Of a stretch of 64,000 nucleotides of DNA, positions 1,608-51,638 are shown in pieces. The DNA is taken from positions 6,076,001 to 6,140,000 of the forward strand of contig NC_047019.1 in NCBI RefSeq assembly GCF_902652985.1. Direction: 5' to 3'. Within the stretch, counting starts at the first letter, position 1. The number at the start of each line of letters is the position of its first letter. The stretch is from Pecten maximus (Eukaryota). The notes beneath the pieces were generated by a model. It did no database searches. It saw nothing but the letters and a program-made list of their open reading frames with translations, and was not told the origin of the DNA. Position numbers and translations under genes: made by a program.

Positions 1608-1759
1608 TTGTGCGTGTTGGGTACACCAGCTTAGGAAGGTGGCAATGGGAAGGGACATCTTTTAAAGAGCTGGGCGTTTTCCGAGTTTGACGTGGTGATG
1701 ATGTCACATCCGTTTCCGTATGACGATGCTCAGCCACAGAATCTTATATCAGCTGATAT
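1608..1759 (+). pseudogene. Alternative exon 2a of copy 1, with in-frame TAG
   Basis: Reads [42 protein letters not shown] at 1632-1634 corresponds to GAG in copy 4. Bounded by tag| and |gtacgt. Confidence 0.85.
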
Positions 1760-2105
1760 GTACGTGAGGTTTTCTATTTACTGCAAGTTTATCATTTTCT
1801 TTGTAATCAGATTTTCACACCTCTGAATCCCTCTTAGCAATAACACACGTCTCCTGGGGCCTGGAGTCAAAGGAAAACTCCTACCATTGCATATTTCATA
1901 AACAGCCTTGCAACCCACTATCTCAAAAGATTTACGTTGGTGAAATACCATTGAGATTCTATACCATCAAAGCTTATTGAGGAATTTTTCAACGAATGGT
2001 ATATTCTGTGTTTCTATGAATAATCCGCGATTCGACCTTGATTTCCATGAAAGAAAGACCATTCCTAACATACCTAAACTGACGATGTTGTCATACATGC
2101 TGTAG

Positions 2106-2253
2106 TTGATGGTGTTAGAAACCCCGACAGGAGAAGGAGGCGCGGGAAAATCCTTCTCGTCGATAAACACGGATTTCATAATATTGACATGGCGATAATG
2201 TCACATCCGGCACCAGGAAATGTTTTAAAGCCACCCATGCTTGCCCGTCAGAG
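2106..2253 (+). pseudogene. Alternative exon 2b of copy 1, frameshifted
   Basis: 148 nt versus 149 nt for the intact 2b at 50758-50906. One base is lost in the Gly-rich stretch and the GTPAEE motif has several substitutions. Confidence 0.8.
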
Positions 2254-2602
2254 GTTTGCGAATCTCAATATTTAATACCTACACATTTTCCGGCTTACTT
2301 GCAGTTGTATTTTAATCGGGATATATTAAGAAGGCGATCCTGAATAATCGTGCTTGCATGTCGATATGTTTGGTAGCACTGTAACATATTCAATTATATC
2401 ACTTTAAGTATATGTGTACAGTTGATATTGTCACCATCCAACATATCTATGGTCCAGTTGTCTCGTAATGCCGTCTATGCATGCAGGTTATTAATGCTCT
2501 GAATATTACGCTTCGTGTCCTTTGGGAGATTCCCTGTTTCCTTTCCTGGAATAGTCTCTATGCCAAGACTGTTCATGTTCTCATTGAAGCTATTCTTAGC
2601 AG

Positions 2603-2751
2603 ATAACTGTTATGGGGACCCCAGACGAGGAAAACGAAGGAGGTAAATTAATTTTGCTACAAAAAGAAGCGTTTGAGAAATTTGATGTAGCTATGATGTC
2701 ACATCCTGGACCGAGTGACGCTCTGCTTCCAAACACAATGGCACTGGATTG
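2603..2751 (+). CDS. Alternative exon 2c of copy 1, intact
   Basis: Reads [50 protein letters not shown]; 149 nt; cag| and |gtcagt boundaries. Confidence 0.85.
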
Positions 2752-3280
2752 GTCAGTTGTAGAAATAAATTTCCATGAATAATCATAAAAGCTGCCCGAT
2801 TGATTAGCATTATATGTATGGTTGACATGTTCCCGCCACTTCTCAATAGACATAAAAATCCTATATGTAATCAGAATACACAGATTTATTTATATCTTAA
2901 CCATTGTAGCAAGTTCTATTACTACAGAAAATGTCATACTGTTTATTATTTCAAATATGTTCCACTATACACATGTATTACATCTGATATATTTAAAGTG
3001 TCACATTTGCGGGAAAAGTTTAGATAATAGGAATGACACTTTGTTTCCAGGGTAACGGTGACCTATAAGGGCAAGGCCAGTCACGCCGCGGCATTTCCCT
3101 GGGAAGGCATCAACGCGCTGGACGCGGCAGTCACGTGCTACCAGACCGTGTCCAGCATGCGCCAACAGATGAAGCCGACATGGAGAGTCCAAGGTAATGT
3201 TTTTAAGCACTATTTCCAAAGATGACACAGAAATTGAGGTTTTGATTACTATTTCCAGTATGTACTTCTTGTGAAGTCTT

Positions 3281-3498
3281 AGGGGCTGCTATGACCGATT
3301 GGCTGAGGTGTCCCGAAACTTTATCACTAGCCCTCCACATGTCTGTCCAGAGTTCGAAACCCAAGTGGGGCAGTTACCTGGTACTGAACGTAGACCGGTG
3401 GTTTTCTCCGGGTATCCATCTTTCTTCCAACTCCTCAACCTTGCATCTCCTTAAATGACTCTGGCTGTTAATAAGACATTACATAAATCAAATAAACC
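3281..3498 (+). mobile_element. tRNA-derived SINE, degenerate copy in intron 3 of copy 1
   Basis: Similar to the SINE at 56151-56379; B-box gttcgaaac and core ggttttctccgggta. Confidence 0.8.
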
Positions 3499-5499
3499 GA
3501 TTGTTAAGAATTTAGGTACTATCTATATTTAATTTTTGTAGGATTAATGTAATTTTAGTTTTGTCATGTTCTATGAAATTGTATATATGACGATATAAAT
3601 GTAATTTTCTTGGTGTAATTACTTCTATAGGAATTATCACAAAAGGTGGAGTAAGGCCAAATATCATACCAGAAGAGGCTTCGTTGGAATATTACATCCG
3701 GGCACCAAATAGGGCGGAGCTTAATGTGCTGCGGGAAAAGATCATCGGTTGTTTTGAAAGTGCAGCAACCGCAACAGGATGCAAGGTAGAGTCCTATGTT
3801 TGAAATATATATCGTCCATATAAAAAGATTTTTATTCGACCTTGAATGAAAAGTGGCTTGATCAATAGTTGAACCAGAATAGCGGAAAATAATTAAATGA
3901 ATAAATTATAATTTTCTAGCGTTTCTTTTTTTTTTTAGGTTGAGTACGACTTTTCAGATATGCCATATTTAAATGTCATCAGTAACCAAGCTCTGGCTTC
4001 GTCATTCGAGACAAACGCCAAGAGCCTGGGGTTAGATTTCAAGAAACATGGACTGCCTGCAGACAATGTTCCCTTGGGATCAACCGATATGGGAAACGTG
4101 TCATACGTTGTTCCTAGTATCCATCCGTTCTTTTACATTGGAACAGACGAGGTCAACCACACTAGGGGCTTCACTGGGGCTACAGGTAAGGTGAATCACA
4201 CTAAGAGCTTTATTGGGGCTACATTATCTATATATTACCTACATCAATACGGTGTTTTCTCCTTTCAAAAATGTTTTGAATTAAAATCAACAATAGTGTT
4301 ATGTTTATGTCCGGAATCATTTGTTTCCGATAAGGTCCATTCCCATTCAATCACTTAGGATATATATTTGATTGTCTCTTAACGCTTCTAATTCTTACAG
4401 ACATTTCCATGCGATGAATTCAATGTTAAATCATTTAAAGTTCACAACAGTAACGTTAAGGTTTTATGAAAGATATGTGCATATGCGATCATACCTTAAG
4501 TATGGGTGTAAATTACCTTTTTATAGTGTTTCATTTTGATGCTAATTCTAGAATATTAAAACAATTTATTCATCCCAAAAGGTGCCGCTGCCGCCCAGCC
4601 GTATACCATACTACAGGGGAAGGCAATGGCGATGACAGCCATCGACGTCTTCACAAACAAAGATATTTTACCCAGAATCAAAACCGAATTCGACGATGAA
4701 CCACAGAGGAAGACTTAATTTCATATGTATGTTGGAATAGTTTATGAAAATATTAAAGCTGCGATAACATTCAACACAGCATTGCATTTTAGTTCATTTA
4801 ATTCTTCCTGATCAGTCATTAATTGTGTTGTATAATATATTGATAAACATCTGAATAATTACACTAACACAAATAAAAGAAATCGTGATTTGTTTTTGTT
4901 TTTTGTTGTTTTTTCCCCCGAATTATTAATATTTGTGAATAAACTTACTTCATGATATTCTAAATATTTTGTGTTTATCTGTCATTGTTTAACGCTACGT
5001 TTCCACATCACTTAACAGACATGCGAATCCTTCAGTCACATTATACTGACAGCCAGTGTGTTACTCGTCCTTACCGCCAACATCGAACCTGAAGATCCGC
5101 ATAAAATAGCATAAATTGTGTACAGGTGGATATTGGCTGGGTTCTGATAAATATGCAGCCTTTTCCTTTTGGTGGCATAGCTGTGGTCATCAACTTCAGT
5201 GATCTCACTTTTTGATCTTCAGGGCTGCCTAAATGGACATTGTAGAGGTATTCGTCTGCTTTGACGGATTAACTTGTGTAATGTTACGAGAATTTCAGAA
5301 TTATTCCGATATGCTAGAGATCGAAACATCCTAGAGATGTCTAATTTCAGGTTATCGTGATAAATAAAAAAAAGAATGGCTGACAGATTTTTTCATATCT
5401 TTTACGAGTAGCAGGTCTCCTTAATAGAAATATAACCCTGAACCTTTTGGACAGCCCTTTCCTGGATTCAGGTACTCCAGAGGTCCCGGGAGTCAATAG

Positions 5500-6045
5500 T
5501 TTAATAGTGACATTTTAGACAGTGTTACTCAGACGGTTTGGGCCCTAGAAAACGGCAAACTCGAATATTCCCGCGAAATTTTGAATGAGCTATCTGACAA
5601 GGTAAAACAGCGTAACAAACTCATACGTATAGCAGATACGTCAGAAGGAGGGTGGGAAACCGTACGTCAATACGAGTGTCACCCAGTAGCTAGTGATTCC
5701 GATGTTGAGAGTAAAATTTGGAGGGCAGAAGCGAGGTCGGTCAAAAAGAAGAAAGATGTGTCTCGCAAAAAATGTCAGCGTTTTACTAGCAAGTCTGCTG
5801 GGTCTCCTGCTGTTAGCTCTGGTTTCTTGGGCGGTCAGGGAGCAGCTAAACCTTTTGGACAGCCCTTTCCTGGATTCAGGTACTCCAAAGGTCCCGGGAG
5901 TCAGCCTGTCTACTCAAGGGCAGGGACATCGCATGGAGGCGGAGCGTGCTTCGGTTGTGGCGAGTTTACCCACTACAGACGGGATTGTCCGTACACAGGA
6001 GGGTCAGGAACCCCGACTCCCCCACAAGTTGTTACCAAAAAGTGA
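5500..6045 (+). pseudogene. DIRS gag-like ORF, 5' truncated
   Basis: RNKLIRIADTSEGGWETVRQY motif and CFGCGEFTHYRRDC zinc knuckle. Confidence 0.8.
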
Positions 6046-6073
6046 GAACAGAGGGACTGTTTCGCACGATGAA

Positions 6074-7851
6074 ATGGAAGATGAGTATTTTCTTAATAAT
6101 CAATTTACACGTGACTATTATGAATACGAACAAGAGGGCAAGAAAATTTTAGTAAAGGGGAGACTGAAAGAAAATTACGATTTCTGGAGAGAAATAGGCA
6201 CTAATGAGTATTTAAATGGGTATAAGATACCATTTTATTCAAATCCTGAAAGTTGTATTTGGAAAAATAACAAATCAGCATTGGCAGAGTCCGATTTTGT
6301 TCAAGAAGCCATTAGTGATCTCATGCAGAGAAATCTAATAGTGAGGTGTAGGGATATTCCACGTATTGTCAATCCATTGACAGTTTCTATACAGAGTAAT
6401 TCTAAAAAGAGGTTGATTTTGGATTTAAGAGTTGTTAACAGACATTTATGGAAGCAGTCTGTAAAATATGATGATATTCGTACAGCACTGATGTATGTCC
6501 ATAAGGAATGTTGGATGTTCAAGTTCGATATACATTCCGCGTATCATTTTGTAGATATATATTTGCCACATACGGAGTATTTAGGTTTTTCCTGGACTTA
6601 CAAAGATGGTACAACTGTTTATTATTGGTTTTACCTTTTGGGCTTTCCTCTGCTCCATACATATTTACAAAACTTTGTCGGCCTTTAATTGCGAAATGGA
6701 GAGGGGAGGGGAAGTTGATGTTGATGTATCTTGACGACGGTTTTGGATGCGGTAAAGATTTTAGTAGGAGGGTTCCTGTCAGAAAGGCAGCCAGTCTTGT
6801 GGGACAGATTATATCCATGAGTGTTGTGATAGGAAATGTTTCCCAAATTATGACCAGGTTTATCAGTATGGATATTACGCAGGCGGTTTCTTGGAATGCC
6901 TATATACAGATATCTGACGAGAGTTTATTACAGTTAAAGTTTTGGAGAGACAACGTTAACAAGGTTAATGTTAAAGTATTAAATGAGGCTGAAAACTGTT
7001 CGAAAATAGTGTACAGTGACGCAAGTGGCTCTTGTTTTGGTGGTTACGAGGTTAATACAGTGAATGGTGTGGCCCACGGGATGTGGACGGTGGAGGAGAG
7101 TGTCAAATCTTCGACGTGGCGGGAACTAGTGGCGGTGTCGAGGGTTTTAAAATCCCTTGGTAGTATTTTGATTGGCCATAGAGTGAAATGGTTCACAGAT
7201 AACACAGGGGTTTGTAAAATTGTGGAAAAGGGTTCTATGAAGCATGACTTACAGTTAGTTGCTATTGACATTTTTCATACTTGTATTAAGTATGCTGTGT
7301 CTCTAGAGATGGAGTGGTTGCCCAGGACATTAAATGAGCGGGCAGATTATCTGTCCAGGGTCTCCGAGAGAGACGACTGGGGTATTTCCATGGAAATGTT
7401 GGATATCATTGTTCAAAGATGGGGAACACTTGATGTTGATTGGTTTTCATCAGTACATAACGCTAAATTATCAGTTTATTTTTCAAGGTTTTGGAATGAG
7501 GGCTCCGCGGGGGTTGACGCGTTTGTTCATTACTGGGGCGACAGTAGAGGGTTGTTTGTACCTCCCCCCATATTGATTCTACGAGTTGTGAGAAAAATCA
7601 TTTACGATAAATCACAGGGTGTTTCGATCGTACCTTTGTGGAGATCGTCTAGTTTTTGGTCAGTGATTTGCAAAGATGGCAGATTTATATCACAAGTTGT
7701 GGATTACATAGATTTACCTACAGGGAAGGAAAGGTTTACACCATGTAAAAATGAGGTTGGTATGTTTGGTACGAAGGATTTGAATTTCCGAATGTTAGCG
7801 TTGTATATAAATTGTAAAGGTTTGAACACGGCAAACAAATTGTTACATTGA
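6074..7851 (+). pseudogene. DIRS pol: reverse transcriptase, RNase H and DAM-like methyltransferase domain; frameshift near 6620 and apparent internal deletions
   Basis: KKRLILDLR, KFDIHSAYHFV, LPFGLSSAPYIF, YLDDG (RT); YSDASG, SSTWREL, WFTDN, NERADYLSR (RNase H); DVDWF..AGVDAF..LFVPPP (DIRS MT domain). Confidence 0.88.
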
Positions 7852-7973
7852 TTGATTTCAATTATTAGGTGCATTTTTGAGGGATAATATGCATTTGTGA
7901 TTTTGGTGATTATCATACATGTACTTTGGAATATACGTGTATATATTGAGTTTGATTTGTATATATTACTTAT

Positions 7974-8180
7974 ACCGCAAGGCGAGATGTGTTTATGTTT
8001 ATGCCGCATGGCGAGATAATGCCACATGGCGAGATGATGCCGCATGGCGAGATGATGCCGCATGGCGAGACTGATACATGTGTATGCCGCATGGCGAGAT
8101 TGATGCATGTTGATGCCACATGGCGAGATGATGCCGCATGGCTAGATTGATATAGTATGTATGCCGCATAGTGAGATTGA
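7974..8180. repeat. 18-bp-based tandem repeat (tgccgcatggcgagatga) between pol and YR
   Basis: About 9 imperfect copies, visible directly. Confidence 0.85.
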
Positions 8181-8264
8181 TATTTTTGTGCGATATAACG
8201 AAATTTGTATGTTCAAATATGCTGTATATTCATTATATTTTCTCTTTTAAAAATGTTTTTTCAG

Positions 8265-9261: not shown

Positions 9262-9706
9262 TCATACAATATATTTTCTCGTTCTTTTGCGGTTCAGCGA
9301 CGATCAATGTGCTTGTTACAATAAATACTATTATTGTTATTCTGTTGTTGTGTTTTTTTTATCAGAAGGTGTGGTATTGCAGGGAAATATAATTATCGGA
9401 GTTTGATGGGACAGAATGAGCCGATAATTATTTTCCCTTCGGTGTCATACTTTCTGATAGGAGGCGCTTTAGGTGCGTAGTGCACGTGCTGGACGTGTGG
9501 TAAGGTATTAGTATAGTCGGTCATTCAGCGGTGTTATAAATCGGAGTTTGATGGGACAGAATAAGCCGATAATTATATTTCCCTCCAATACCACACCTTC
9601 TGATAAAAAACACAACAACAGAATAACAATGCGCTTGTTACAATAAATACTATTATTGTTATTCTGTTGTTGTGTTTTTTATCAGAAGGTGTGGTATTGG
9701 AGGGAA

Positions 9707-16968: not shown

Positions 16969-19900
16969 ATGGCGCACTTAAAGAGAGTTGCTTGTAAAGC
17001 GATTGACGGGGTAGCTTTGAAACTAAACAAAATCAGTCAGGAATTATGGAAAAATTCAGAGATGAACTACAAAGAGCACCATGCTCACACCATACTGACT
17101 GATTTCCTGGAAAATCAAGGATTTCACGTTGACAAGAAGTACAAACTCGACACGGCTTTCCGGGCCACATTCGGAAACGATAGGAAGGGTCCACATGTGG
17201 CGGTGTTGTGTGAGTATGACGCACTGCCAGAGAATGGTCACGCATGTGGACACAACCTGATAGCAGAACTGGGCGTGGCAGCCGGGGTTGGAATCAAGGC
17301 TGCCATGGAAACATCCAGGCAACCTATCGGCAAGGTAAATGATTCCATTGATTCATGTATTATAAAATAACAACAATGTTTACTATCAATAAATATATCA
17401 ATGTAAATATGGGTCGAATTTCAATGTAACTTTTCACTTTCAATATTTTTTGGAGAATTATTGATCATTGGTTTGAAATTTAGAATCCAGTAAACATATT
17501 GAACAAGAATGCATTAAAACGTATAGTTAATTGGTCATCTATTTTGGTTATGAATTAAATTTCACTTAAGATCTTTTTAAGTATTTTTTTTTTTTTTTTT
17601 TTTTTTATTTCTTGATGGCAAAAAATGTGGAAGTGCATAGTTTTATCAAGGAAGCAATAAAAACATTAAATAAAGGAAATTTGTCAATTTTTCTTGTCCT
17701 TTTGTCATTTTGGCAAGGCACAAATATGGCAATATCACCATTATCATGTAAACAAGTACAGATAGATATAGGACTATAGTAAATGATACACAGAATGAAT
17801 AGTTTAAAACATCGCTTCGGCTGGCCGAAGGCTGTTCAGTGGACAGCTCTTGAATATTTTAATAGTAGCTGTCTTATCTTCGATGGCTGTGTCAATATAT
17901 TCAATACCTATATGTCGAACTTTATTTATATATACGACATGCATCAGCCTCGTACATTGGAAAAAATGAAAGTTTATCTGTTGGGATAATGGAACAAATC
18001 AAGCAGATCTTTGAAATCAAGAAGAAAAAAACTAACATTTTTTGTTTTTTCTAAAAAAAAAAGGCAGTAACTAGGATACATGCATTGTAACATAAAGTAT
18101 GTGATTATATCAAGTTATACTTTTTTTAAAGTGTAGAAAAAAAACAACATATGTAAAAATAAGATAAATATATGTATCAACACATGCTTTCACATTTCTC
18201 ATATGCATGTATAGGTTCATGCATGGATGTAAATGATGTAAATGATATAAATACCGTGATATACAGTACGCGTCAGGTGGTATGGTCCCCAATCACCGCC
18301 ACAGTGGCGAGGTCTAATCCCTTCCACTCACTCAGTCGGTTGCATGTCGGTTGAAACACCGGCTGACACCGGCTCAAAACCCGAGTGTTCACCTGTTTAC
18401 TGACACCGCGCGACACGGTGTGGAAGAGTGTTGGGGATTAGTGGAACAAAGGTCCTGATTCATGATTGACAGGTACACTGCCTGATACCGTGATGTGTTT
18501 GCTGGAACATACTTTGTCGTACAGTACAGGTACTCTGTAGCTGGACTTACATTTTGTACTTACAGTATCAAGAAACGTGATATATCTGATATTCACGTCT
18601 CTGCAGTATCCCAGCCCGGTGTTGAGAAAACGGGGATATTTTTTTATGTAATGAAATCACGATCTATACTAGCGATACTACAGATGCATTGTGTTGTAAA
18701 TGTACGGTACATATACACTCCAAATTATGTACGTTTTTAGTTTTTAAACCCTAGCTAGATGAGTACCACAAATGTTTACCGGGAAATCGAGAAAACAAAA
18801 CACTGTAACATTTAACGATATTTTGCCGCCTTATTGTTTGTGTTATTTATAGCAATATTGTGATTGGCGCGCGAGCGAGTAAATCCCGCTCGGCTTTCGA
18901 TTGACTTTGAAGTAAGTCTTGAATGATTAATATAATAATAACTTAACTAAAACAAAAAAAAAAGCATCTGACACTGCTGTCTGTTTATGTCCCCATTGAA
19001 CACTATACACCTGGCCTATCGTAGCACTACCATCACAAAGAATCCTGGATCTCGGAACAACTAAACCTGATATACACAAGTCTCTGATGAAATGTATCTA
19101 AACAGTTTGAACATCCTTTCGTAATATTCCGAGGTGGCATATTGAACAGAAAATATGTTATCGGTACTAGTGTATCGAGTGTACATGTGCTGACTTCACG
19201 TACATGTACACTTATAATATGCATAAGAGCCACGATATAATTATTACAATTTGACAGTTTGAGTATGAGTAGAGTTTTAAAGTAATTTTTTTCCGAATGT
19301 TAAATAAACAAAGAGTTGTCATGGTATCATTATGAAAACTTTATGAAGCCATATATATGCTCATGACCGCCTTTTTACTACCGGACGCTAATTATATAAT
19401 TAGTATATTAACCCATGAATCCAGACACGACCGCGGCTCTATCACACGCCTCGGTTACTTCAATGTACAGGCAGATACAATGTACGTATATTGTATATTT
19501 ACATAGATTCATATTAATTTCTGGTAAACTAAAAAAAAATATTTGGACGTATTACCAGAAACGCGTATTAGGGATAAATAAAATCGCTATTTACCCGTAC
19601 AACTCTCTTTTTATTCGTGACCAGTCAAGCATATCCCTTATCGAGAAGGCCTCGTCCCCTATCACACACGCGAGCACAGGTAAATCGGTCTTTGCTCATG
19701 AGGGTATCACTTCGGGGCAAATAGAGAGCTACTTATCTCTGTTATATATGTTTCTGGTATTACAAATTGTAGCACCTTTTCATTAAAATTTTTGATTTGT
19801 TCACAAGTTAAGGGAAATGTGTGCAATTTAAAAAAAATTAAGAACACAAACGATACATTTTTGTTAACGCGGCATGCATCAATAACTAGTTAAATATCGT

Positions 19901-22900: not shown

Positions 22901-25900
22901 AAAATGATGAAGCCTTCTTACAAATCTGGAGACCTATCGCTCTGCTAAATGTGAATTATGAAATTGCAATTAATGTATTAGCACCAAGACTGAAATTTAT
23001 TGATTAATTATTATGTAAATACATGATATACATGTATTAGATTAATCAGAGAAATTTCAAATAAAAGAATTATTTTCAGGTCTTAAGAAGGCTTTTGATA
23101 CTATTTAACGTGATTTTATGCTAAAGGCTGTAAAACGTTTTAGATTCGTGGAATATTTTGTGTCTTGGGTTCGAATAATGTATTATGAAATTTGTACGGG
23201 TGTATATCTAATAATAATTGTATATCGGATACTCTGAACATGATGTTAGGAGTTGTAAAAGAGTAGATTAACTGGGAAAATATAGACTATAAAATTTATT
23301 AATGGAAAAAGTGCTATAATAAATGCACTAGTTATACCAAAAATTAATATTCCTACACATGAAGCATGTTAGTACTGAACTAATTTAGGGAAANNNNNNN
23401 NNNNNNNNNNNNNNNNNNNNNNNNNNNNNNNNNNNNNNNNNNNNNNNNNNNNNNNNNNNNNNNNNNNNNNNNNNNNNNNNNNNNNNNNNNNNNNNNNNNN
23501 NNNNNNNNNNNNNNNNNNNNNNNNNNNNNNNNNNNNNNNNNNNNNNNNNNNNNNNNNNNNNNNNNNNNNNNNNNNNNNNNNNNNNNNNNNNNNNNNNNNN
23601 NNNNNNNNNNNNNNNNNNNNNNNNNNNNNNNNNNNNNNNNNNNNNNNNNNNNNNNNNNNNNNNNNNNNNNNNNNNNNNNNNNNNNNNNNNNNNNNNNNNN
23701 NNNNNNNNNNNNNNNNNNNNNNNNNNNNNNNNNNNNNNNNNNNNNNNNNNNNNNNNNNNNNNNNNNNNNNNNNNNNNNNNNNNNNNNNNNNNNNNNNNNN
23801 NNNNNNNNNNNNNNNNNNNNNNNNNNNNNNNNNNNNNNNNNNNNNNNNNNNNNNNNNNNNNNNNNNNNNNNNNNNNNNNNNNNNNNNNNNNNNTTTATCT
23901 GATTTTTAAATAGCCTATATATAATATCAGTCAAATCTCTTTCCCTCGGGATATGGATGAACCGTTTCCCTCGGCCTTGTTAAATACGTGTAGTTCATCG
24001 GGTTTGTCCCCGAGGTGAAATGAGGTTTGACTGTTGACTGAGCCATGGAACAACTTATTTTACTTGTTTGAAGAATACCAAGACATCATTTAATATTTTA
24101 TACAGAAGCAACATTCTTAATTCAGTCGGAGTATTTTCCAGAATCAACGGGTGTAAGAAAAAGCTAAGAAACAAATTTTTTAAGTAAACATTCAGAATGA
24201 CGAAAGCGTTCTAAGCATCTGCCTTTTTGGGCAAAAGACAACCATATCTTAAATGTTTTCTGATTAAAACAGTAAACACTTTAGTTAAACATGCATTATA
24301 TTGTTATCATTATTTCCACTGTAGGTGACCGTGCTGGGAATTCCGGCAGAAGAAGGAGGTGGCGGGAAAGTTATTCTCATCGACAAACACGCCTTTGACA
24401 ATTTTGATGTGGTGATGACGTCACACCCTGAGCAAACAGATAGTGTGAGGCCGAATCTGATCACCATTCAGAGGTAAGGGATTGGTGTGAGGCCGAATTT
24501 GATCACCATTCAGAGGTAAGGGATTGGTGTGAGGCCCAATTTCATTGTCATTCAGAGGTAAGGGATTGGTGTGAGGCCGAATTTGATCACCATTCAGAGG
24601 TAAGGGATTGGTGTGAGGCCGATTTTGATCGCCATTCAGAGGTTAAACATTGTCTTAGAAGACATGATCGCAGGTGATCAGACGACATAGTAAACACGTC
24701 TTTCCTTAAGGCGGACGAAGTTTGATTCCCTGACGGACTAAGTAGATAGTCCTTTCCTTTGCCATTAAAAAAAATTAGAAATGGATTTCGAACTAACGTC
24801 AAACACATCTTAACCCAACCCCCCCAAAATATATCTTTCGTGTTTGTGTTACCTACAGCAAGTCAGCTGATAATTTTTTTAAAATTACAATATGATTTGT
24901 TTTTCTTTGTTTTAAAAGTTAAAACATGTTACAGGATAATTTATACTGTGTGTTTTGTTGTTTTTTGTGAATCATAATAATTACATATCATCTGATAATT
25001 ATACTACAATATATAGTAGTGTACATGTATACCGTTGGATTTATTGTATTGTACATACATGAACATAATTTACATAGTAAATGATGTAGTATTTGTCATA
25101 TTTAGTATTTTTAGCCTAATTACTTAAGTTATAGTAGTGGTCTACTCTGTTTCCAGGGTAACCGTGACTTATAAGGGCAAGGCCAGTCACGCCGCTGCAT
25201 TTCCCTGGAAGGGTATTAACGCACTGGATGCGGCAGTCACGTGCTACCAGACCGTGTCCTGCATGCGCCAACAGATGAAACCGACATGGAGAGTGAACGG
25301 TAGCTATTTATATTTCAAGAAGCAAGTAATTTCTCCGCTATTGTTTGCTGAGAGATGACCAACCCCTTGAAGGTTTGACAGACAGTTAGTATGGGATTTA
25401 TTGACGTGATATATTGGATATCATTTCAATTTTATTTCAATTAGATGTTCGTAACTTGTCAGCCAGTTTTACCTGTTTTCACTCACAGATACTCAAAAAC
25501 TAAGCAGCCTAAGGATCATGAATAATTAAGTTATTACTCTATTATATCTAATTTGCGATTTGTAATGGAACTTAACCCTGCGTATACTTTAAATCGGCAT
25601 AGGATGTGCATAATGAATATCATATTTTAGACTTACATTTCATTGGTGAAATTGGAGACCGTGATATATAGATATAGGACGACTATTTTACGTTATTACT
25701 ATTTTTTTTTTTTTTTTAACAGGAATAATAAAAAAAGGTGGTGTGAAAGCAAACATCATACCAGAAGAAGCTGTACTGCAATATTCCATCCGGGCACCGA
25801 ACAAGACGGAGCTTAATGTGCTGTTGGAAAAGATGTCTCATTGTTTCGAAAGTGCAGCTAAAGCAACAGGATGCAAGGTATAACATGTTGGCATTCGATA

Positions 25901-37367: not shown

Positions 37368-40300
37368 ATGGCGGAGTTAAAGAGAGTCGCTTGTGAAGCG
37401 ATCGACAGGGTAGCTTTGGATCTAAACAATATCAGTCAGGAATTATGGAAGAATCCAGAATTGAACTACAACGAGCACCATGCTCACACCATACTGACTG
37501 ATTTCCTGGAGAATCAAGGATTTCACGTGGAGAGGAAGTACAAACTCGATACGGCTTTCCGGGCCACATTCGGTGACGATAGCGCGGGTCCACATGTGGC
37601 GGTGTTGTGTGAGTATGACGCGCTGCCAGAGATTGGTCACGCATGTGGACACAACCTGATAGCAGAAGTGGGCGTGGCAGCCGGGGTTGGAATCAAGGCT
37701 GTCATGGAAACATCCGGGCAACCTATCGGCAAGGTAGGCTGGAAGTAAACAAACATTTAAAAGTACGTGAATCATGCGAATATTTTCTTAAGCAGATAAC
37801 TATGTCTGTTTATTAATAAATTGTCAATAGTGTACCATCGTGGGCTGCACGATGATAATAGAAAATATGTAATAATATCGATGAATATGAATATTACGGT
37901 CTGCATTTTTATACTCTAATTGATAAGTTGATTATGTTTTTCCAATTCACAGAAATAAACTTCTCGTTTTATCACAAATATCACATTGATTTGTCACCGT
38001 CACTGAAAATGATTTTTTTTTTATCGTACAGAAGTTTGGGACAGGGCATTATAATTTACATAAATGACAAGAAGGCAGTCTGTATAGGTTTATTGTTTTT
38101 TGTTTATGTTTTTTTGGGTTTTTTTTTTTGACGATTACATAAAATATCTTCAACGACACATGTTCTAATTTCTTATATCTGTAGAATAAAGCAATTCTGA
38201 TTCTTAATTAGAACTGTGCACGGTCATCAACTAGCGTAGCTCCTGTCCGGCACACCGTTTTTTCTGCTGCCCTGTACGGGATCTTCTTCCGTTTCCGGTT
38301 CAACTTTTTCTAATGCCTAATTCCTAGTTAACTGCAATATAAATAATACTTGTATAGGAATTATACCAAGCTGATTTGGGGCGGACATTCCTTGATAGGA
38401 TATTTTGTGCCGTACATCGTGAGCTCGTAAAAACACATTGTGATTTTTTTTCATATTAAAGAAATAGGGAGTTCCAAACACAATGTATAATTGGTTAGTC
38501 AATGTAATATATGACTGTTGAGAAATAGGAAGTTCTTATTCGTGGTTTGACATTCCAGACAGTAACACACACCTTTATACTGGTATATATTAGCCTACTA
38601 TTGACTTTACTTTACTTACATGTTGTTTATATAAAATGTTTATCTAATTTTAACTTATAATTTGATAATCTGCTTGTTGGTATATACTTGATGTCTTTTA
38701 TGTGCCCCAAAGACAGTGATCTCATGCCATGGCGCAGCCTTTTTTCGTCTGGTGTCCGTAAACAATCTCTACTTGTCCTTAATAACAGAATGGATTATGA
38801 TAAAAACTCTGAAGTATTACTGAGAAAAGAATACTCAACTGTTCAATAAACAGAGAGTCTGACTCCCTGGTGGGTGGGTTTGAAGGGAAAACGGGAAATA
38901 GACGTAATCCTTTTTAATTTTTTTCTTTTGCATTGCGTAATAGATTTTTGAGTTTTTGATAAATGAACTTTGACATTAATTCAAAATTGTAATTCCAACT
39001 GAAAATTATCAAAGTTTATGATGGCATATTTGATGATGTGTGTAATGTCATTGGATGGTTGTAATTTAGGATTACGTGATTAAAATCATTTGTGTTTCTG
39101 ATTATAGCAAGAATTGGAAGGTAAATTGTTTTTATATAGCTCATAAGTATATCCTACAGAGGGGACAGAAGGGAAAGAGAATGTAAAAATGACTATTTAA
39201 GTTAATTTCTTTTTAAATGAATTTTCGCAGAGGTTTAAGATGGGAATATATTTGCTATACAATTTGAATTATATTAATTATTATTGCTGTTTAGACATAA
39301 TCCCTCAATATTTAGGTTTACTGACTAGCTGCATTTATTCATCTACTAGTTGTGCGTGTTGGGTACACCAGCTGAGGAAGGCGGCAATGGGAAGGGACAT
39401 CTTTTAAAAAGCGGCGCGTTCACCGAGTTTGACGTCGTGATGATGTCACATCCGTTTCCATATGACGATGCTCGGCCACAGAATCTTATATCAGTTGATA
39501 TGTACGTGAGGTTTTCTATCTACTGAAAGTTTATCATTTACTATGTAATCAGATTTTCACACCTCTGAATTCCTCTTAGGGCATGGAGTCAAAGGAAAAC
39601 TCCTACCATTGCATATTTCATAAACTGTCCTGCAACACACTATTTCAAAATATTTACTTTGATGAAATCTCGTAGAGATTCTGGGCTACAAGATTATAGG
39701 ATTCAATGTCTTATTGAGGAATATTTTAACATTGAGAAGCTAAAAATGTTTACAGTCGGTATATTCTGTGTTTTTGTTAATAATGCAGTCATATCCTTTC
39801 ATCCGGGCTTTGACCTAGATTCCCATGGAAGATAGAGCCTTTGTAAACATAACTAAATTGGTGGTATTGTTATACGTGCTGTAGCTGATGGTGCTAGGAA
39901 CTCGGCAGAAGAAGGAGGTGGCGGGAAAATCCTTCTCATCGATAAACATGGATTTGATAATATTGACGTGGCGATGATGTCACATCCGGCACCAAGAGAT
40001 ATTTTAAACCCACCAATGTTTGCCCGTCAGAGGTTTGCGAATCTCAATATCCCAATACCTACAATATGTTTCGGCTTTATTCGCTGCTGTTGCTTTATTT
40101 TAATCGGTATATACTATGAAGGCGATCCTAAACAATCTTGCTTGTATGTCGATATGTTTGGTAGCATATTTCACTATATCACTTTAAAGCCATGTGTACG
40201 TTGATACTGTCACCATCCAACATAACTATGGCCCCGTGGTCTCCTAATGCCGTATATGCATGCAGGTTATTAATGCTCTGAATATTACGCTTCGTGTCCT

Positions 40301-43300
40301 TTGGGATATTCCCTGTTTCCTTTCCTGGAATAGTCTCTATGCAAAGACTGTTCCTGTTCTCATTCAAGCTATTATTGGCAGATAACTGTTATGGGGACCC
40401 CAGACGAGGAAAACGAAGGAGGTAAATTTTGCTACAAAAAGAAGCGTTTGAGAAAGTTGATGTAGCTATAATGTCACATCCTGGACCTAGTGACGCCCTG
40501 CTTCCAAACACAATGGCACTGGATTGGTCAGTTGTAGAAATAAATGTCCATGAATAATCGTAAAAGCAGTCCGATTGGTTGGCATTATAGGTATTGTTGA
40601 CATGTTCCCGCCACTTCTCAATAGACATATATAATCATATATTTAATCAGAATACACAGATTTATTTATATCTTTACCATTGTAGCAATTTCTATAACAA
40701 CAGAAAATGTCGTTCTGCTGATTATTTCAAATATGTTCCACTATACACATGTATTACATCTGATATATTTAAAGTGTCACATTTGCGGGGAACGCTTAGA
40801 TAGTAGTAATGACACTCTTTGCTTCCAGGGTAACCGTGACGTATAAGGGCAAGGCAAGTCACGCCGCGGCATTTCCCTGGGAAGGCATCAACGCGCTGGA
40901 CGCGGCAGTCACGTGCTACCAGACCGTGTCCTGCATGCGCCAGCAGATGAAGCCGACATGGAGAGCCCACGGTAATAATTTTAATCACTTTCTCCATGGA
41001 TGAATCATAGACAAATAAATTGACGTTTTGATATACCTTTTCGCCATATATGTTGATACATATGGTACCCAGAGATGTTGGGGATCAGGCGAAGAGGTTT
41101 ATATAATTGATATGGTATTTCGATATATTTGCTACCAAGAGGTGTGTAGCTTTGGCGAATATGTTTATAAAATTGATATGCTAATTTTATACTTTTTAAC
41201 TTGCTCTGCCAACATTAATTGATTACTATTTCCAGTATGTACTTCTTGTGGAGACTTAGGGGCTGCTGTGGCAGATTGGCTAAGGTGTCCCGACACTTTA
41301 TCACTAGCCCTCCACCTCTGGGTTGCGAGTTCGAATCCCACATGGGGCATTTACCTGGTACTGACCGTAGGCCGGGTATCCGGCTCTCCTCAACCTCCAA
41401 AACCTGCCACGTACTTAAATGTCCCTGGCTGTTAATAATACGTTACTTAAATCAAATAAACCAATTGTTAAGAATGTAGGTACTATTTTATATTAATTTT
41501 TTGTAGGATTAATGTAGTTTTAGTTTGATCATGTTCTATGAAATTATGTTAATCACGATATAAATGTAATTTTCCTGGTGTAATTACTGCTATAGGAATA
41601 ATCACAAAAGGTGGAGTTAGGCCAAATATCATACCGGAAGAGGCTTCGTTGGAATATTACATCCGGGCACCAAATAGGGCGGAGCTTAATGTGTTGCGGG
41701 AAAAGATAATTGGTTGTTTTGAAAGTGCAGCGACAGCAACAGGATGCAAGGTAGTGCGCGATGTTAAACACATATGTTGTCCATATTAAATAACATTTAT
41801 TCGTCTAGATTTAAAATGGTAATATAAATAATTGGACCGGAGTAGCAAAAAGCAAAAAAGTATATAAATAATGGAGTTTTATTATTTCATTTCTTATCAG
41901 GTTGAGTACGACTTCTCAGATATGCCATATTTAAATGTCATTAGTAACCAAGCTCTGGCTTCGTCATTCGAGACAAACGCCAAGATACTGGGGCTAGATT
42001 TCAAGAAGCATGGATTGCCTACAGACAATATTCCCTTGGGATCAACCGATATGGGAAACGTGTCATACGTTGTCCCTAGTATACACCCATTCTTTTACAT
42101 TGGGACAGACGAGGTCAACCACACTAGGGGCTTTACTGGGGCTACAGGTAAGGTGAATCAAACTAAGGGCTTTATTGGGGCTACAGGTAAGTCAATCAAA
42201 CCTCAATATAGGCTTTATTGGTGAGGGAATTCATTGGTGCTACAGGTATGGGACTATATGTAGGTATACCCAAACACAATATGAGATTTCCTTGTGTAAG
42301 AGGTAAGATGAACCACGCGAGAGAATTCACCGGTGCTACAGCTATGGAAACCACACTAGGGGCTTCAACAAGGCAACAGGTAAGGTCAACCATACAAGGG
42401 GCTTTACTGGTACTACAGGTAAGGTCAAACACACTAAGGGCTTCATCAAGTCTATAGAATCTTACACATTTTTCAAATTTACCTTCTCTGGGACAGGATA
42501 GGACCATAGGGTATGATGTCCAAATAGGAAGTGGCTGGCTGCAAGTATTGGGCTGATAGGTCAAGTCTTCTATTGGTACCGAAGATGGAGATTCATATTA
42601 GAAAAAAACATGAAAATTGAAACAAATTTTTGATTAATATATAAATATCTTGATGAATTTTGAATCCAGACAGATGTCTTTTGGTCATACAAGAGTATTG
42701 ATATTGTACTACTAAAAAATATAAACAAATAAGATATAGCCTGAAGATGAAGGGGAGATAACTCCATGCTATCTCCCCACCCCCCAACCCACCCCTTATT
42801 ACTCGACTTAATCTAAAAAAAACTAGGACAAGAGCAATTATTTATATAATTGAGTCAAAACACACACAGGACAGTGGGCCGGGCTAGGGACAACAGAACT
42901 ACCAAAATAACCACCAAAAATCGAACCGGGGTAGTGACAACAGAACAACCAATCACATCACCGAACACCGAACCGGGCTTGGGACAAGAGTACAACCAGA
43001 AAAACCACCAAACATCGAACCGGGGTACTGTCTACAGAACAACCAGACATACTACGGGACTACAAAACACGCTTCATACAGCTACCACTGAAATAAATAC
43101 TATATTTTCGTATTATTCTGATCTATGACCCCCTTTACACTCTACACATGCCCATATTTTCATTATAAACAATCTCAGAATCTGATTTCCTGCTTAAATT
43201 CTGCCAAAATACCTTCATGATGAAAATCCCAGCCGAACATGTTCAGATGGGTCCCGTCATCTGGTGTCCAGGAACGCTGAACGGCATAAAATGTCAAATC

Positions 43301-45677: not shown

Positions 45678-46075
45678 ATATAGAGAATACATGGTCAGTG
45701 TCTTAAAATATAAGCTGTATTTTGGCGAGGGTAAAGAAAGACAAAAGTGGCGAGCCTTGGCGAGCCACTTTTGTCTTTCTGTCCCGAGCCAAAAATACAG
45801 CTTGTATTTTAAGACATTGACCATGTATTCTATTTATCCTGCAACAGTCATAAAAATACTTATAAAAAATAATTATTTTGAAGTGAAACGGCGTCAAAAA
45901 TGATAGAAATATGTTCGCCTTTTAAACGTAGTTTCACTTTGAAGTAGGTCAGTCGAACTGACGCACGTGCTAAGATTCCAAAATACAGCTGTTTTCCGTC
46001 ACTGCCGTATACAGCAAAAATATATACGGTGGGTGTATTCCGACAATGCGGTGGCAGTTGCAGGATAAATATATA
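45678..46075. mobile_element. Non-autonomous element with terminal hairpin (45680-45836) and a short inverted repeat at the other end
   Basis: gaatacatggtca...tgaccatgtattc hairpin; tatttatcctgcaac (45831) is inverted as gttgcaggataaata (46057). Confidence 0.7.
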
Positions 46076-47140
46076 TTGGTGATGTGCGATTCGGTTCAGT
46101 AGTCACACAGCAAGCTATACTGTATAGACAAATATAACAATAGACAAATGATAACCAGTAATCCCATTGAGATTTGAAATAGGCTGTTTATTGCAAAAAC
46201 GACATAAAATTTAATAATGATGTACATATATACAATAAATGCCTCATCACACTGACCAAAAATGCATGTAGTCATCATGATGTATACGACTATTGTAGTA
46301 GGAGAATTAGGATTGGGTGTGGGGGTAGGGGTAGGGTGTGTGAAAAACAAAACACCTCACAAAGAGTTCTGCATTGTAACTATATTCTAAACACAACTCT
46401 CTGTGGACACCACAATGCATTTACAATAGAAGCATTTCCTACACATTAATAACCTCTGGGCTGCAAGGACATTATTTGGCATTAGATGACCTATTAATTC
46501 AGTACTTTATTTACAGTAGTGTAGGTTGGGATTCCTCTATATTTATACAGATTTACAATGTACATCAACTTGATTATTTTAATATAACGTAAACAATCAC
46601 AACCTGGTAACCTATATACAATACGCACAACATGAATATTCATCCCTGTTACTGAGAATACATTATTTATTTACTATGGAAACAAATAATCAATAAATCA
46701 ACAACATTACCACATGTTGTATATGACGACATTTATTTAGTCATAATACTAAAGCGTAATTTAAGTAATTATATCTACTCTGAATTAAAACAATAAAACG
46801 TAACAGCATGACTCTTTATTACACGATATATCTACTGAACGCATTGACAAGACAAAGCGTAGTTGACTAGAATTTACAATTTCACATGAAACATTTACAA
46901 TAATATTCTTCTATAGAAAACGATAAAAAAAGAACATTTATTTCAATATACTAGTAAAAAAATGAATATTTCGTAAAGGATTACTTACATTTATGATGCA
47001 TATCTGTACTACATTTTCGACACGTATTAGAACGATTACCAGCCCGGGACTCCATACAATATTTCGGCAAGGTTGTGTATTATATATACACCACTGAACA
47101 CAATATTATCACCAACAGTTATCAGACAAACTGATACAAC

Positions 47141-50100
47141 ATGGCGGAGTTAAAGAAAGTCGCTTGTGAAGCGATCGACAGGGTAGCTTCGGAACTAAAC
47201 AATATCAGTCAGGAATTATGGAAGAATCCAGAGATGAACTTCAAAGAGCACCATGCTCACACCATACTGACTGATTTCCTGGAGAATCAAGGACTTCACG
47301 TGGAGAGGAAGTACAAACTCGACACGGCTTTCCGGGCCACATTCGGTGACGATAGCGCGGGTCCACATGTGGCGGTGTTGTGTGAGTATGACGCGCTGCC
47401 AGAGATTGGTCACGCATGTGGACACAACCTGATAGCAGAACTGGGCGTGGCAGCCGGGGTTGGAATCAAGGCTGCCATGGAAACATCCGGGCAACCTATC
47501 GGCAAGGTAGGCGGGAACAAAACAGATATCAAAATAGTAGATAAATCATGCGAATATTATCAATATATATAATTTAAGTCTGTGTTATAAGAAATATCCA
47601 GTGACCAATATAGAACCATGGTGGTCTGCATCATAATAATAAAAAATATTCGATGGTATAAATGAATTCGGATATCACGTTCTGCATTTTAAACTCTGAT
47701 TGATTGGTTGATTATATTTCTCTAATTCACAGCAATAAAATTATTTATGCATATCACTGTATTTAGTCTTCGGCGTCACTAAAAAGGTGATTTTATCTCA
47801 CAGAAATGCATACGATATTTCATAATTTGCATAAATGACAAAACAAATTTGTTTAGGAAAACTATTTTCTATGTATTCTAAAATATTCCAAAGACACATG
47901 TTCGAGTTTCTTTTCAATGAAGTGTTGCAGATACTGCAGACTTTGCACGATGCTCACCTCAATTTAAAATCTGACCGGCACATCCTTTTCTGATTCCCTG
48001 AACGCGTTCTCCTTCCACTTCCAATCAATTTTTCCCAATGAAGCTCCGCCTGCTTCATATCCAATAGAGTTAAGATGGTACTTGTAATTTTTTAGTGTTT
48101 GATACATGTCAGTAGTGAATGTTATTTACCGTCCTGAATGTAAACGTTTGCCAGCTACCTACAAAGTGATTTTCAATCATACAAGATTATAAATAATACT
48201 TGTATATGAGTTATGCTAAGCTGACTTGGCATAATAGTAAAAGTAAGTAAATTGTTTTCTTCATCATTTGGTTTTCTATGTTATATCCAAATACAAAATA
48301 CATTGTCGTTAACAATAAAATCTTGTTGATCCGCAGATACGAAATACGAATTTGTGACTGTTAAGAAATAGGAAGTTCTCATACAGTGCTCGCTGTCTAA
48401 CATTGCAGACAGTATATTACATATTTATAACCGTATTTGTTAATATATAATACACTTACTTCACTTACATATTGTTTATATAAAATGTTAAACATTTATC
48501 TCATTTATCTTATAATTATTAATCTCCTTATTTGTTTATCGTATGCCATTATGTAGCGTCCGACGCCCGTCTGACGTTCTTAAACAATCGCTACTTGTCT
48601 TGGAAAGCTGAATTGATTTTGACCAAATTAAGTTTGTAGCATTATTCAAGCCGATTGTCTCACTTTCCTCGGGGTTGGTCGGAAGATGATAGAGAGAAAA
48701 GGACTAAATATGTCATTCTTCCTTGGTATTGTCTTGCTCATCTCCACTATTCAAGGCCTCTGATCACGTTTCACTCCACGTTCATGGAGTGAAAGGTAAT
48801 CAGAAGCCTTGGCTAGCGATGGTGGTCGTGTTTAATTTTTGAGAATTTCTTGGAGTATTTAATAGAAGAATTTTGATAAAAAAGAACAGGGAATACATGT
48901 ACTAACAATAAAACATAATCGAATTCCTATTCAAAGTTGTTAGAATGAGGTCAATTTATAACACAAATACAGATTAGCATATAGGCCCCAAAGAAATTGA
49001 CCATATGTTCAGGAAGAGTAAGCGTTTTCTGCTACCCTCGACGACACCAGCCATGCAAATTTAGATCAAATGAGGTATGTATCCTCATTGGGTGAATGTT
49101 TCAATGATAGAACTATTAACGTATGATGGTTTTATGTATGTATGTTCTTCTGATAACGAATGCATTTTTATTTATGCCTTATCATGACTGTAGATGTAGT
49201 TTATAAATATGTATGAACATGTAGCACTACTTAGTAAAGGTACTGATATACAGCTATCCATCTTTGCTCGGATAATATATATAAAATGTCTATCTTGTCA
49301 AGATATCTAGGTGAATGCATGTATGCTCGTTAAGAAACATGTTACGATTAAATGCTTGAATAAGTCAACTTTTAATGTCTGACTGACGTGTATAAATGTT
49401 TTTTTCTGATTATTTTCCTACATGTATAATCTTGGTTGGGGATAACAGATCAAAAATAGGTCTTGTCAAAATATCTAATTAAATGCATGTATGCTGCTTG
49501 ACTTGTGTGTGATGACATTTGCTATGATTTGATGATTGTATAGTTGAATTTTGCATGTATACATGGTTTTATTATTTAAAAAAAAGAATGAAAATGTCTT
49601 TCTTCTCATCCTTTGTCAACTATATCAATTATAAATAATTCAAAAGTATATCCCACTTCTAGAGGGCGAGAGGCGGGCCTGATAGGGGAGGTGGAGTCCT
49701 TTTCAATAAGGATTCCTTTGGATCAGCTTTCAAGTAAGAAACCAGCTGATTCGCGAACAAACTCCCTAACATCCCGAGTATTCAAAGTTTTTTTTATAAA
49801 CGATTTTTATTGTCGAAACTGAATTTTTGCTTCGAGTTAAGAAGCCTTTGAATAATCAAAGTTCGATATAACGAAGTTTGACTATAGCTATCAATTATTC
49901 TGTTTCAATCCGTTTACTTTTTTCTGACTTTTTCCTGTATGTCAACGCTTCTAGACATTAGCATCACCTCACCGACGTGCTATAGAAGACACTAGCAGAA
50001 AGCACGTGCAGAAGATGCCGTCGTGAAAACTGACGAGTGATATAAGTGATATTTGACTCCTGTGAAATTCCCTGACTGCATATCATGACGATATATTGTA

Positions 50101-51638
50101 AAATATTTTCATGGATATGGCCAAGGTATCCAATTCCATAAGCATTAGGTTAGGAACATTGTATTCTATGTTCGCGTACAATTTATCTAAGATTGCTTTC
50201 TTTATATATCTTCAATTGTTAAGATGAAAAATGAGACTTTATCAATAATTTCCTAGCTTTTGTTTACAGTCAGTATATTCCTGTGTGTTAAACAAAACTA
50301 ACCTTTGAGTCCCGATTTCGCATGTATTTGCAAGGCGGGTTTGGTCGATGATAACCTTTGAGCCGCGGGTAAATTTACGTGGTGGGTGTCGTTGATGATT
50401 ACATTTGAGCCGCGAATATATTTACATGGCGGGTGTCGTCAATGATTACCTTTGTGTCGCAACTATATTTGCATGGCGGGTGTCATAAATGATTTCCTTT
50501 GAGTCGCGACTAGAAGCAGACGTCGCTTACCTTTCCATTGGCTTATTAATCTCGTACTTTTTCAATGGTCTATAAATCAATATATTTTGCAAATTATTTA
50601 CACTAGGTTGAATTTGATTTCTTTTACATAATCTCCTCGATGTCTACTACTAAGAACGAACGGAACATATCTTATTGAATTACTTATCATCATCGATTAG
50701 AATGTCCATTCCTTTGTAAACATACCTTAACTGATGGTCTTGTTATACATGCTGTAGTTGATGGTGCTAGGAACTCCGGCAGAAGAAGGAGGTGGCGGGA
50801 AAATCCTTCTCATCGATAAACATGGATTTGATAATATTGACGTGGCGATGATGTCACATCCGGCACCAGGAGATGTTTTAAAGCCGCCCATGCTTGCCCG
50901 TCAGAGGTTTGCGAATCAATGCTTACAACCGTCACAGTCTTGATATAGCATGCTTTCATATTTTCCTTCTTTTAATGCTGTTTCACCTTGTATTATTCTA
51001 ATCGGGACCTGCTTTGAATGAGATCCTAAACCATCTTTCTTGCATATCGATATGTTTGGTAGCGTTGACATATTCACCTATATCACTTTAAGTATGCATG
51101 TACACTTCATATTGTCACCCTCTAGCACATCTATGTCGTGCTTTTGGAGACATTCCCACTTTCCACTCCTGGATTAGTATGCTTTTGTTCTCATTAATCA
51201 AAGCTATTCTTGGCAGATAACTGTTATGGGAACACCAGACGAAGAAAACGAAGGAGGTAAACTTATTTTGCTACAAAAAGAAGCGTTTGAGAAAATTGAC
51301 GTAGCTATGATGTCACATCCGAGGCCGAGTGACTCTCTACTTCCGGGCACATTGGCACTTGATTGGTCAGTTGCCGAAATAAGTTTTCTTAGAATAATCG
51401 TTAAAGCTGTCTGATGTTTTGATATCATATTTCTGATTTTCATATATTGCCACAACATATTATCACCTTATTTATCTCACTGTGATTCATTTCAACAGAT
51501 AAAACTAACACCCTTATTTAATCGGAATGTATTTTTTTTACCATTTTACTAATTTTTGTAACAACAGAAATGTCATATTGATGTTTGTAATGATGCTCCA
51601 TAATATAAAAGTGTCACCTTTTAATGAACAAGCTATAT

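Follow-up and report, generated by a model that had tools for sequence, protein, structure and literature searches.

Differential loss of homologous exon-2 cassettes among tandem PM20D2-like genes of Pecten maximus, a probable partial separation of splice isoforms

The question raised by a 64-kb stretch of the scallop Pecten maximus (assembly xPecMax1.1, chromosome scaffold C5:6076001-6140000; the window) is how a set of alternative exons fares once the gene that carries it is duplicated. The window contains five plus-strand paralogs similar to PM20D2, an Xaa-Arg dipeptidase of the M20 family. Each of these genes, called copies 1 to 5 in their order along the strand, carries one to three tandem versions of exon 2 (149 or 152 nucleotides (nt)), referred to here as cassettes 2a, 2b and 2c. 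Positions without a prefix are those of the window, and the features are collected in Table 1. The differential loss of cassettes among the copies is real and is a new example of a process that is already documented as splice isoform separation (PMC4494069). A real, largely passive and partial separation of splice isoforms among the tandem paralogs is the favored reading of the locus, with a probability of roughly 0.6.

Sequence searches were run exon by exon and counts were summed over exons. Exon 1 matched the PDB entry for the Xaa-Arg dipeptidase PM20D2, 7yh4 (E = 1.2e-27), and cassette 2b aligned with residues 175-217 of the same entry (E = 4e-8). The nearest database proteins are named 'peptidase M20 domain-containing protein 2-like'. 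Pfam searches with single exons, which are short for domain models, returned only M20_dimer, whose match in exon 3 scored 18.8 bits and fell below the gathering cut-off of 21. Exons 3-6 follow exon 2 in all five copies. The motifs HxCGH (as HACGH), PAEE, HP and NHT were read in the translations of copies 2-5, and the cassette motifs were read in every open cassette.

The anatomy of exon 2 defines what a working cassette must look like. Exon 1 ends in phase 0 (GGCAAG followed by the donor GT) and the first base of exon 3 is the third base of a split codon, and a working exon 2 therefore has a length of 3n+2 nt. Cassette 2a has 152 nt and cassettes 2b and 2c have 149 nt each; all three types have an AG acceptor and a GT donor, start in phase 0 and end in phase 2. 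A transcript with zero, two or three cassettes enters exon 3 in the wrong frame, which makes the cassettes mutually exclusive by reading frame, and transcripts of a wrong form would presumably be removed by nonsense-mediated decay. The three types share the same flanking exons, equal phase and near-equal length, as expected of tandem homologous exons. Exon 2 encodes a GTP(A/D)EE motif, an MMSHP motif and the loop that follows each. The motif residues are identical across 2a, 2b and 2c, and the stretches after EE and after HP vary. In M20 enzymes generally, one of the two Glu presumably acts as the catalytic base and the other, like the His, as a metal ligand. Products made with different cassettes may differ in substrate preference.

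The cassette content of the genes differs from copy to copy. The initial annotation had described a reciprocal pattern in which copy 1 keeps only 2c and copy 4 keeps only 2a, and in the assembly this is what the reading frames show: a TAG codon in 2a and a 1-nt deletion in 2b of copy 1 beside an open 2c, and deletions of 1 nt in 2b and 4 nt in 2c of copy 4. Copy 5 keeps 2b and 2c, and its reported lack of a recognizable 2a is borne out by tblastn and nhmmer, neither of which detected a trace of one; the part of the copy-5 intron where 2a is expected consists of short dispersed repeats and otherwise unique sequence. Copy 3 has one 2b-like exon and a decayed relic, as described, and in nhmmer comparisons the relic matched the 2a profile best (E 7.7e-7, compared to 0.01 for 2b and 0.19 for 2c). 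The acceptor flank of the 2b-like cassette of copy 3 (32034-32057), attcatctactctag, resembles the 2a flank attcatctactag (1584-1607 and 39326-39349) and not the 2b flank catgctgtag. The frameshifts in the 2b cassettes of copies 1 and 4 are located at different positions, and these losses are therefore independent, as had been proposed. The statement that every gene has at least one open cassette and that every type survives somewhere also holds in the assembly. Of the 10 cassettes, 4 have a disabling lesion, compared to a single one of the 25 constitutive exons, an excess with a Fisher p of 0.017 when counted per exon and 0.010 when counted per nt.

Substitution patterns were used to examine constraint on the cassettes. 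The ratio of nonsynonymous to synonymous differences per site (pN/pS) is 0.23 for 2a (copy 1 versus copy 4), 0.19-0.20 for 2c and 0.26 for 2b (copy 5 versus copy 3). Purifying selection on every type indicates that 2a, 2b and 2c were each translated. The constitutive exons, which are open throughout copies 2-5, are under constraint in every copy (omega, the ratio of nonsynonymous to synonymous substitution rates, of 0.14-0.30). Private changes in 2b, counted as nonsynonymous/synonymous, number 9/3 in copy 1 and 4/2 in copy 4 compared to 0/1 in the intact cassette of copy 5. This excess of nonsynonymous changes indicates that constraint was relaxed on the 2b cassettes that were lost, and it is independent of the indels. 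The 2c cassette of copy 4 has one nonsynonymous and one synonymous private change outside the 4-nt indel, and 2a of copy 1 is likewise almost unchanged apart from its lesion; these two losses are thus very recent, polymorphic or, in the case of copy 4, not real.

A maximum-likelihood (ML) tree was constructed from the ten cassettes and the exon 2 of two distant paralogs located elsewhere on C5, each of which has a single exon 2. The initial annotation had expected the cassettes to cluster by type, and they did so (support values 91/92 for 2a, 87/90 for 2b, 93/93 for 2c), with the single cassettes of copies 2 and 3 falling within 2b. Grouping by gene was rejected in the approximately unbiased (AU) test with p values of 2e-6 when the cassettes of copy 1 were forced together and 9e-78 when those of copy 4 were, at a cost of 189 and 207 log-likelihood units, respectively. 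Synonymous divergence (pS) between types is saturated at 0.63-0.79. Among the 2b cassettes, with those of copies 2 and 3 counted in, pS is 0.39-0.47, which agrees with the gene-level divergence (synonymous rate, dS, of 0.38-0.48 at the deepest gene splits). On these comparisons the three-cassette state is older than the gene duplications, because the tree sorts by type, pS between types exceeds the deepest gene split and copy 3 holds a 2a relic.

Sequencing runs were examined as Logan contigs, from which minor variants are dropped. Contigs of runs X1, X4, X5 and X7 were matched to copy 1 only, over positions 400-4800. The DNA runs X1 and X4 have zero differences from copy-1-specific sequence over more than 1 kb, and by this identity they are probably from the source animal. 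The 2b frameshift of copy 1 is contained in gapless contigs of X1 (1920-2263), X4 (1874-2227) and X7 (1942-2236). X7 belongs to a different study, which brings the support to at least two samples. The TAG in 2a of copy 1 is matched exactly by an X1 contig (1602-1891) that includes nearby copy-1-specific letters and so links the stop to copy 1 by k-mers. X1 is the sole run that supports the TAG; the X5 and X7 contigs begin at 1633 and 1637, just past the T, and are therefore silent on it. The lesions proposed from sequence thus stand in reads for copy-1 2b in three runs and for copy-1 2a in one.

One splice junction was seen. In the RNA run X5, two loose ends show exon 1 spliced to 2a (GGCAAG joined to TTGTGCGTGTTGG). 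One of these loose ends carries the exon-1 end ATCGGCAAG (C-type) that is common to copies 2-5. Among these only copy 4 has a 2a, and the junction is therefore most likely derived from copy 4.

Several observations weigh against reading these data as a separation of ancestral isoforms, and they are taken up here with the alternatives that they bear on. The first concerns the order of events. A clade of all cassettes from copies 1, 4 and 5 was not rejected in the AU test (p 0.15), as would be expected if 2a and 2c had arisen in one copy after gene duplication and had spread by unequal crossing-over or gene conversion, in which case copies 2 and 3 never possessed the full set. Searches of copies 2 and 3 with tblastn and nhmmer also found no significant match to a 2c relic, and copy 1 is itself a recombinant with a copy-3-like 5' end and a copy-4-like body. 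In the free ML tree, 2a and 2c lie outside the group formed by 2b and the copy-2 and copy-3 cassettes, which speaks against such gains, as does saturated pS between types above the deepest gene-level divergence. The 2a-type relic marks a loss in copy 3, and losses in copies 1 and 4 are directly attested by their frameshifted and stopped cassettes. Gain after duplication is therefore very improbable. The AU result does mean that loss of 2c from copies 2 and 3 rests on pS and modest tree support and is less secure than loss of 2a from copy 3.

The second concern is the lesions themselves. Those with read support belong to 2a and 2b of copy 1, and the 2b and 2c lesions of copy 4 are known from the assembly alone. 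Some or all of the lesions could be consensus errors of PacBio continuous long reads (CLR) in paralogous sequence, or segregating alleles, in which case most animals would have full cassette sets. The assembly was built from PacBio CLR data with wtdbg2 and Arrow, the short-read edits applied to it were restricted to homozygous non-reference sites, and heterozygosity is 1.71% (PMC7191990). Two of the three 1-nt deletions (at 641 in exon 1 of copy 1 and at ~39904 in 2b of copy 4) drop one C from the same TCCGG context, which may be a coincidence or a signature of long-read consensus error. The 2c deletion of copy 4 removes one AATT unit of the tandem pair AATTAATT from a cassette that is otherwise almost unchanged, and this one-unit slip would be either very recent or not real. 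DNA contigs at 2486-2770 contain every one of the ten copy-4-type letters and lack the 4-nt gap, and they also have letters foreign to both assembled copies (C at 2584; C at 2648 in X4). Unassembled haplotypes therefore exist in this interval. The contig was rejected as proof of an intact copy-4 2c, since on either side of the indel copies 1 and 4 have stretches of at least 31 nt in common and a mosaic from bubble popping is possible. A search of the assembly for alternate haplotigs of copy 4 returned only the cluster's own copies. An origin of the lesions in errors or alleles is nonetheless quite improbable: Illumina-derived contigs from three runs carry the 2b frameshift of copy 1 without a gap and the TAG is linked to copy-1 letters in X1, cassettes have a higher share of lesions than constitutive exons, the broken 2b cassettes have an excess of nonsynonymous changes that sequencing errors do not produce, and the copy-3 relic is too decayed for an error.

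The third concern is copy 1. In the assembly, its exon 1 has a 1-nt deletion (TTCCGG>TTCGG at 641/642) that truncates the frame after 64 residues. This deletion makes copy 1 look like a pseudogene. The same exon has a G>V change in the metal-site motif EIGHACGH, and copy 1 is a pseudogene candidate that is probably dying as a whole gene. Its open 2c may then be a remnant not yet hit rather than a retained function. The other exons of copy 1 are open and, compared to copy 4, have a dS of 0.17 and an omega of 0.14, indicating purifying selection; these exons have been constrained since the split from copy 4, and any death of copy 1 is therefore recent. Over 586-775, the reads provide only high-depth contigs of other paralogs with copy 4/5-type letters, and these carry the extra C. 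Because these contigs belong to other paralogs, the exon-1 deletion is neither supported nor refuted by them; 0 of the copy-1-specific letters in 641-718 are covered by a copy-1 contig in the four runs.

Copy 2 and a sixth gene bear on the cassette counts. The initial annotation had assigned one divergent 2b-like exon to copy 2. The open cassette is there. A run of Ns lies 431 nt upstream of it, and in copies 1 and 4 the start of 2a precedes that of 2b by ~500-535 nt. The gap covers the place where 2a is expected, and copy 2 therefore cannot be scored as a single-cassette gene. No reading frame crosses the gap, which separates exon 1 of copy 2 from its remaining exons, and the two parts are united as copy 2 by the scaffold. 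After the copy-2 exon, a 42-nt tandem unit is repeated (24443-24643) that consists of the last 33 nt of exon 2 and a GTAAGG donor, and these repeats create a ladder of in-frame alternative donors, each of which adds 14 codons. A sixth copy (copy 0) is located ~12 kb upstream of the window at C5:6063844-6073418 (L010 7844-8209; L011 5957-7418). It has an N gap (L011 5101-5600) at the expected exon 2-3 site, in the same relative place as in copy 2; exons 2 and 3 are not visible, and tblastn and nhmmer found no significant match to any cassette in copy 0. Exons 4-6 of copy 0 are nearly identical to those of copy 2 and its exon 1 is more diverged (pS 0.14), a contrast that suggests either a mosaic history or a fault in the assembly.

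The fourth concern is how far the remaining cassettes complement each other and how they are used. With one type kept in copy 4 and two in copy 5, complementary retention is expected by chance 1 time in 3 and has little weight. The complementarity is also partial, with 2b surviving in three copies and 2c in two. Separation supposes that cassettes are alternatively spliced within one gene and that the ancestral gene would have made all three isoforms; in the runs matched to copy 1, no transcript was seen in which any two cassettes, such as 2b and 2c, are used alternatively by one gene. No copy-1-specific spliced contig, including any that uses 2c, was seen in the same runs. The copy-1-specific contigs of X5 are of low depth and include introns, and one exact unspliced contig (2556-2809) extends over 2c. 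X7 has unspliced pieces with flanking intron over 2a and 2b and nothing on 2c.

These points lend themselves to plain birth-and-death decay with no partition of function, in which redundancy extends to the additional cassettes (2a and 2c) and to a few entire copies (copy 1), complementarity is an accident of the order in which cassettes were hit and no gene is preserved by its cassette. The condition of copy 1 (a frameshifted exon 1, an altered metal-site motif and two dead cassettes), the chance expectation for copies 4 and 5 and the lack of a 2c junction among contigs matched to copy 1 are all in keeping with it. Cassettes 2a and 2c, however, have pN/pS of about 0.2 and keep all catalytic-motif residues despite saturated synonymous divergence from 2b. 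This long-term constraint indicates that both were functional for a long time. Copy 4 holds an intact 2a beside a decayed 2b, and the exon 1-2a junction is present in RNA. Decay without a partition of function is rated as rather unlikely.

A largely passive, partial isoform separation would have proceeded as follows. A PM20D2-like M20 gene would have gained three tandem homologous versions of exon 2 before the tandem cluster formed, and tandem duplication would then have produced at least six gene copies. With several genes supplying each type, individual cassettes would have become dispensable and would have been lost copy by copy. In this sequence of events, 2a would have been lost in copy 3, leaving the relic, and in copy 5 without a trace, 2b would have been lost independently in copies 1 and 4, and the losses of 2a in copy 1 and 2c in copy 4 would be very recent. 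Copy 4 would be on its way to a gene with 2a alone, copies 2 and 3 would be 2b genes, copy 5 a two-cassette gene and copy 1 probably a pseudogene in the making. Complementary loss may have helped to retain paralogs. An isoform partition that preserves the genes, that is, adaptive subfunctionalization, is not established by the sequence comparisons. The initial annotation had seen subfunctionalization caught in progress; its core, that copies retain different ancestral cassettes, stands, and its showcase pair of copies 1 and 4 does not, given the frameshift in exon 1 of copy 1, nor does an adaptive partition find support. A bolder version is a live snapshot of a three-way swap of a catalytic-site exon resolving into single-cassette genes within one array, with the copy-1 2a stop and the copy-4 2c deletion possibly still segregating. 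This version is possible and is held only tentatively. If it is true, the array would be a natural system for studying both the preservation of duplicates by isoform partition and the retuning of an M20 dipeptidase by active-site module exchange.

In the duplication-degeneration-complementation model, complementary degenerative losses divide the products of an ancestral gene among its duplicates. The scallop cluster resembles this model and the splice-form subfunctionalization considered by Lambert et al. 2015 (PMC4417111) in that complementary losses spread ancestral gene products over duplicates, and differs in that its complementarity is only partial. The study by Lambert et al. dealt with cassette exons and excluded mutually exclusive exons as too hard to detect. 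The closest precedent is the separation of mutually exclusive homologous exons described by Abascal, Tress and Valencia 2015 (PMC4494069), with CALU giving rise to CALUA/CALUB in teleosts and U2AF1 in percomorph fish. Their cases and the scallop genes have in common that the exons are older than the gene duplication, that paralogs keep different exons and that the exon tree sorts by type. The scallop genes are tandem bivalve paralogs, whereas theirs arose by whole-genome duplication. The scallop cluster also has three cassettes and at least six genes, its separation is incomplete and pseudo-exons (a stop, frameshifts and a relic) are visible. One of its participants, copy 1, is probably a pseudogene, and alternative splicing of the intact multi-cassette gene is here only putative.

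A curated vertebrate study lists eleven cases in which alternative exons were fixed into separate paralogs, and such cases are few. The vertebrate cases are old, and the intermediate steps are therefore gone. In the scallop array, intermediates are visible within 50 kb: a fresh stop, independent frameshifts, a relic pseudo-exon and a two-cassette gene. The swapped module carries catalytic and metal-binding residues, which could make the array a means of relating changes in gene structure to enzyme specificity.

Homology to human PM20D2 (7yh4, 8xzc) and the M20 family extends over exons 1 and 2 and includes the HACGH, GTPAEE, HP and NHT motifs; the scallop genes differ in having additional repeat expansions at the end of exon 5. 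The expansions consist of 39-nt in-frame repeats (34171-34692, 42100-42450 and 52600-53260), and their degree differs among copies 3, 4 and 5. Alternative active-site exons are not known to have been reported for PM20D2, and a literature search on 'PM20D2' with 'mutually exclusive' returned a single, unrelated paper. A HMMER scan of 1.8 billion representative proteins and an exon-1 word search for scallop proteins that would show cassette use per paralog returned nothing above 72% identity (Haliotis, Batillaria), which indicates that pectinids are missing from the protein collections searched. The Batillaria attramentaria protein model P0001 reads through two tandem exon-2-like cassettes, and duplication of exon 2 in this family is thus not confined to scallops.

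Table 1. Exons, cassettes and assembly gap of the PM20D2-like cluster, in window positions
Feature	Position	Strand	Remarks
Copy 1 exon 1	451..815	+	1-nt deletion 641/642; G>V in EIGHACGH; 5' part 97% identical to copy 3
Copy 1 cassette 2a	1608..1759	+	152 nt; GAG>TAG at 1632-1634, first Glu of GTPAEE
Copy 1 cassette 2b	2106..2253	+	148 nt; 1-nt deletion in GGTGGCGGG, frameshift; PAEE becomes PTGE
Copy 1 cassette 2c	2603..2751	+	open, 149 nt
Copy 1 exon 3	3051..3193	+	first base completes the split codon of exon 2
Copy 2 exon 1	16969..17334	+	open
Assembly gap (N run)	23394..23893	.	intron 1 of copy 2, at expected 2a position
Copy 2 single cassette	24325..24473	+	open, 2b-like, divergent
Copy 3 exon 1	30672..31037	+	open
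Copy 3 relic, decayed 2a-type pseudo-exon	31621..31720	+	without acceptor; stop and frameshift; matches the 2a profile in nhmmer
Copy 3 single cassette	32058..32206	+	open, 2b-like
Copy 4 exon 1	37368..37733	+	open
Copy 4 cassette 2a	39350..39501	+	open, 152 nt
Copy 4 cassette 2b	39885..40032	+	148 nt; one C deleted in ACTCCGG
Copy 4 cassette 2c	40382..40526	+	145 nt; 4-nt deletion, one AATT unit of AATTAATT; otherwise almost unchanged
Copy 5 exon 1	47141..47506	+	open
Copy 5 cassette 2b	50758..50906	+	open; zero private nonsynonymous changes
Copy 5 cassette 2c	51217..51365	+	open

Other elements are interspersed with the cluster. Between copies 1 and 2, the stretches 5581-9253 and 13388-15467 contain a DIRS-like retroelement with weak matches to reverse transcriptase and a Dam-like methyltransferase, as well as a YqaJ-recombinase/SWIM element. 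A tandem array of ~60-nt units occupies 9704-10495. A high-copy element that is probably tRNA-related occurs at 3282-3487, 41259-41464 and 56152-56358 and lies in intron 3 of copies 1 and 4; its contig depth is 5e4-1e5 and its loose ends are GGCCAAGTGGTTA and GGTCGCGAGTTCGAAGCC. Duplicated segments are located at 55379-57352 and 57953-61872, and exons of a sulfotransferase domain (Pfam Sulfotransfer_1, E 2e-15) lie 3' of the cluster on the minus strand at 58674-60154.

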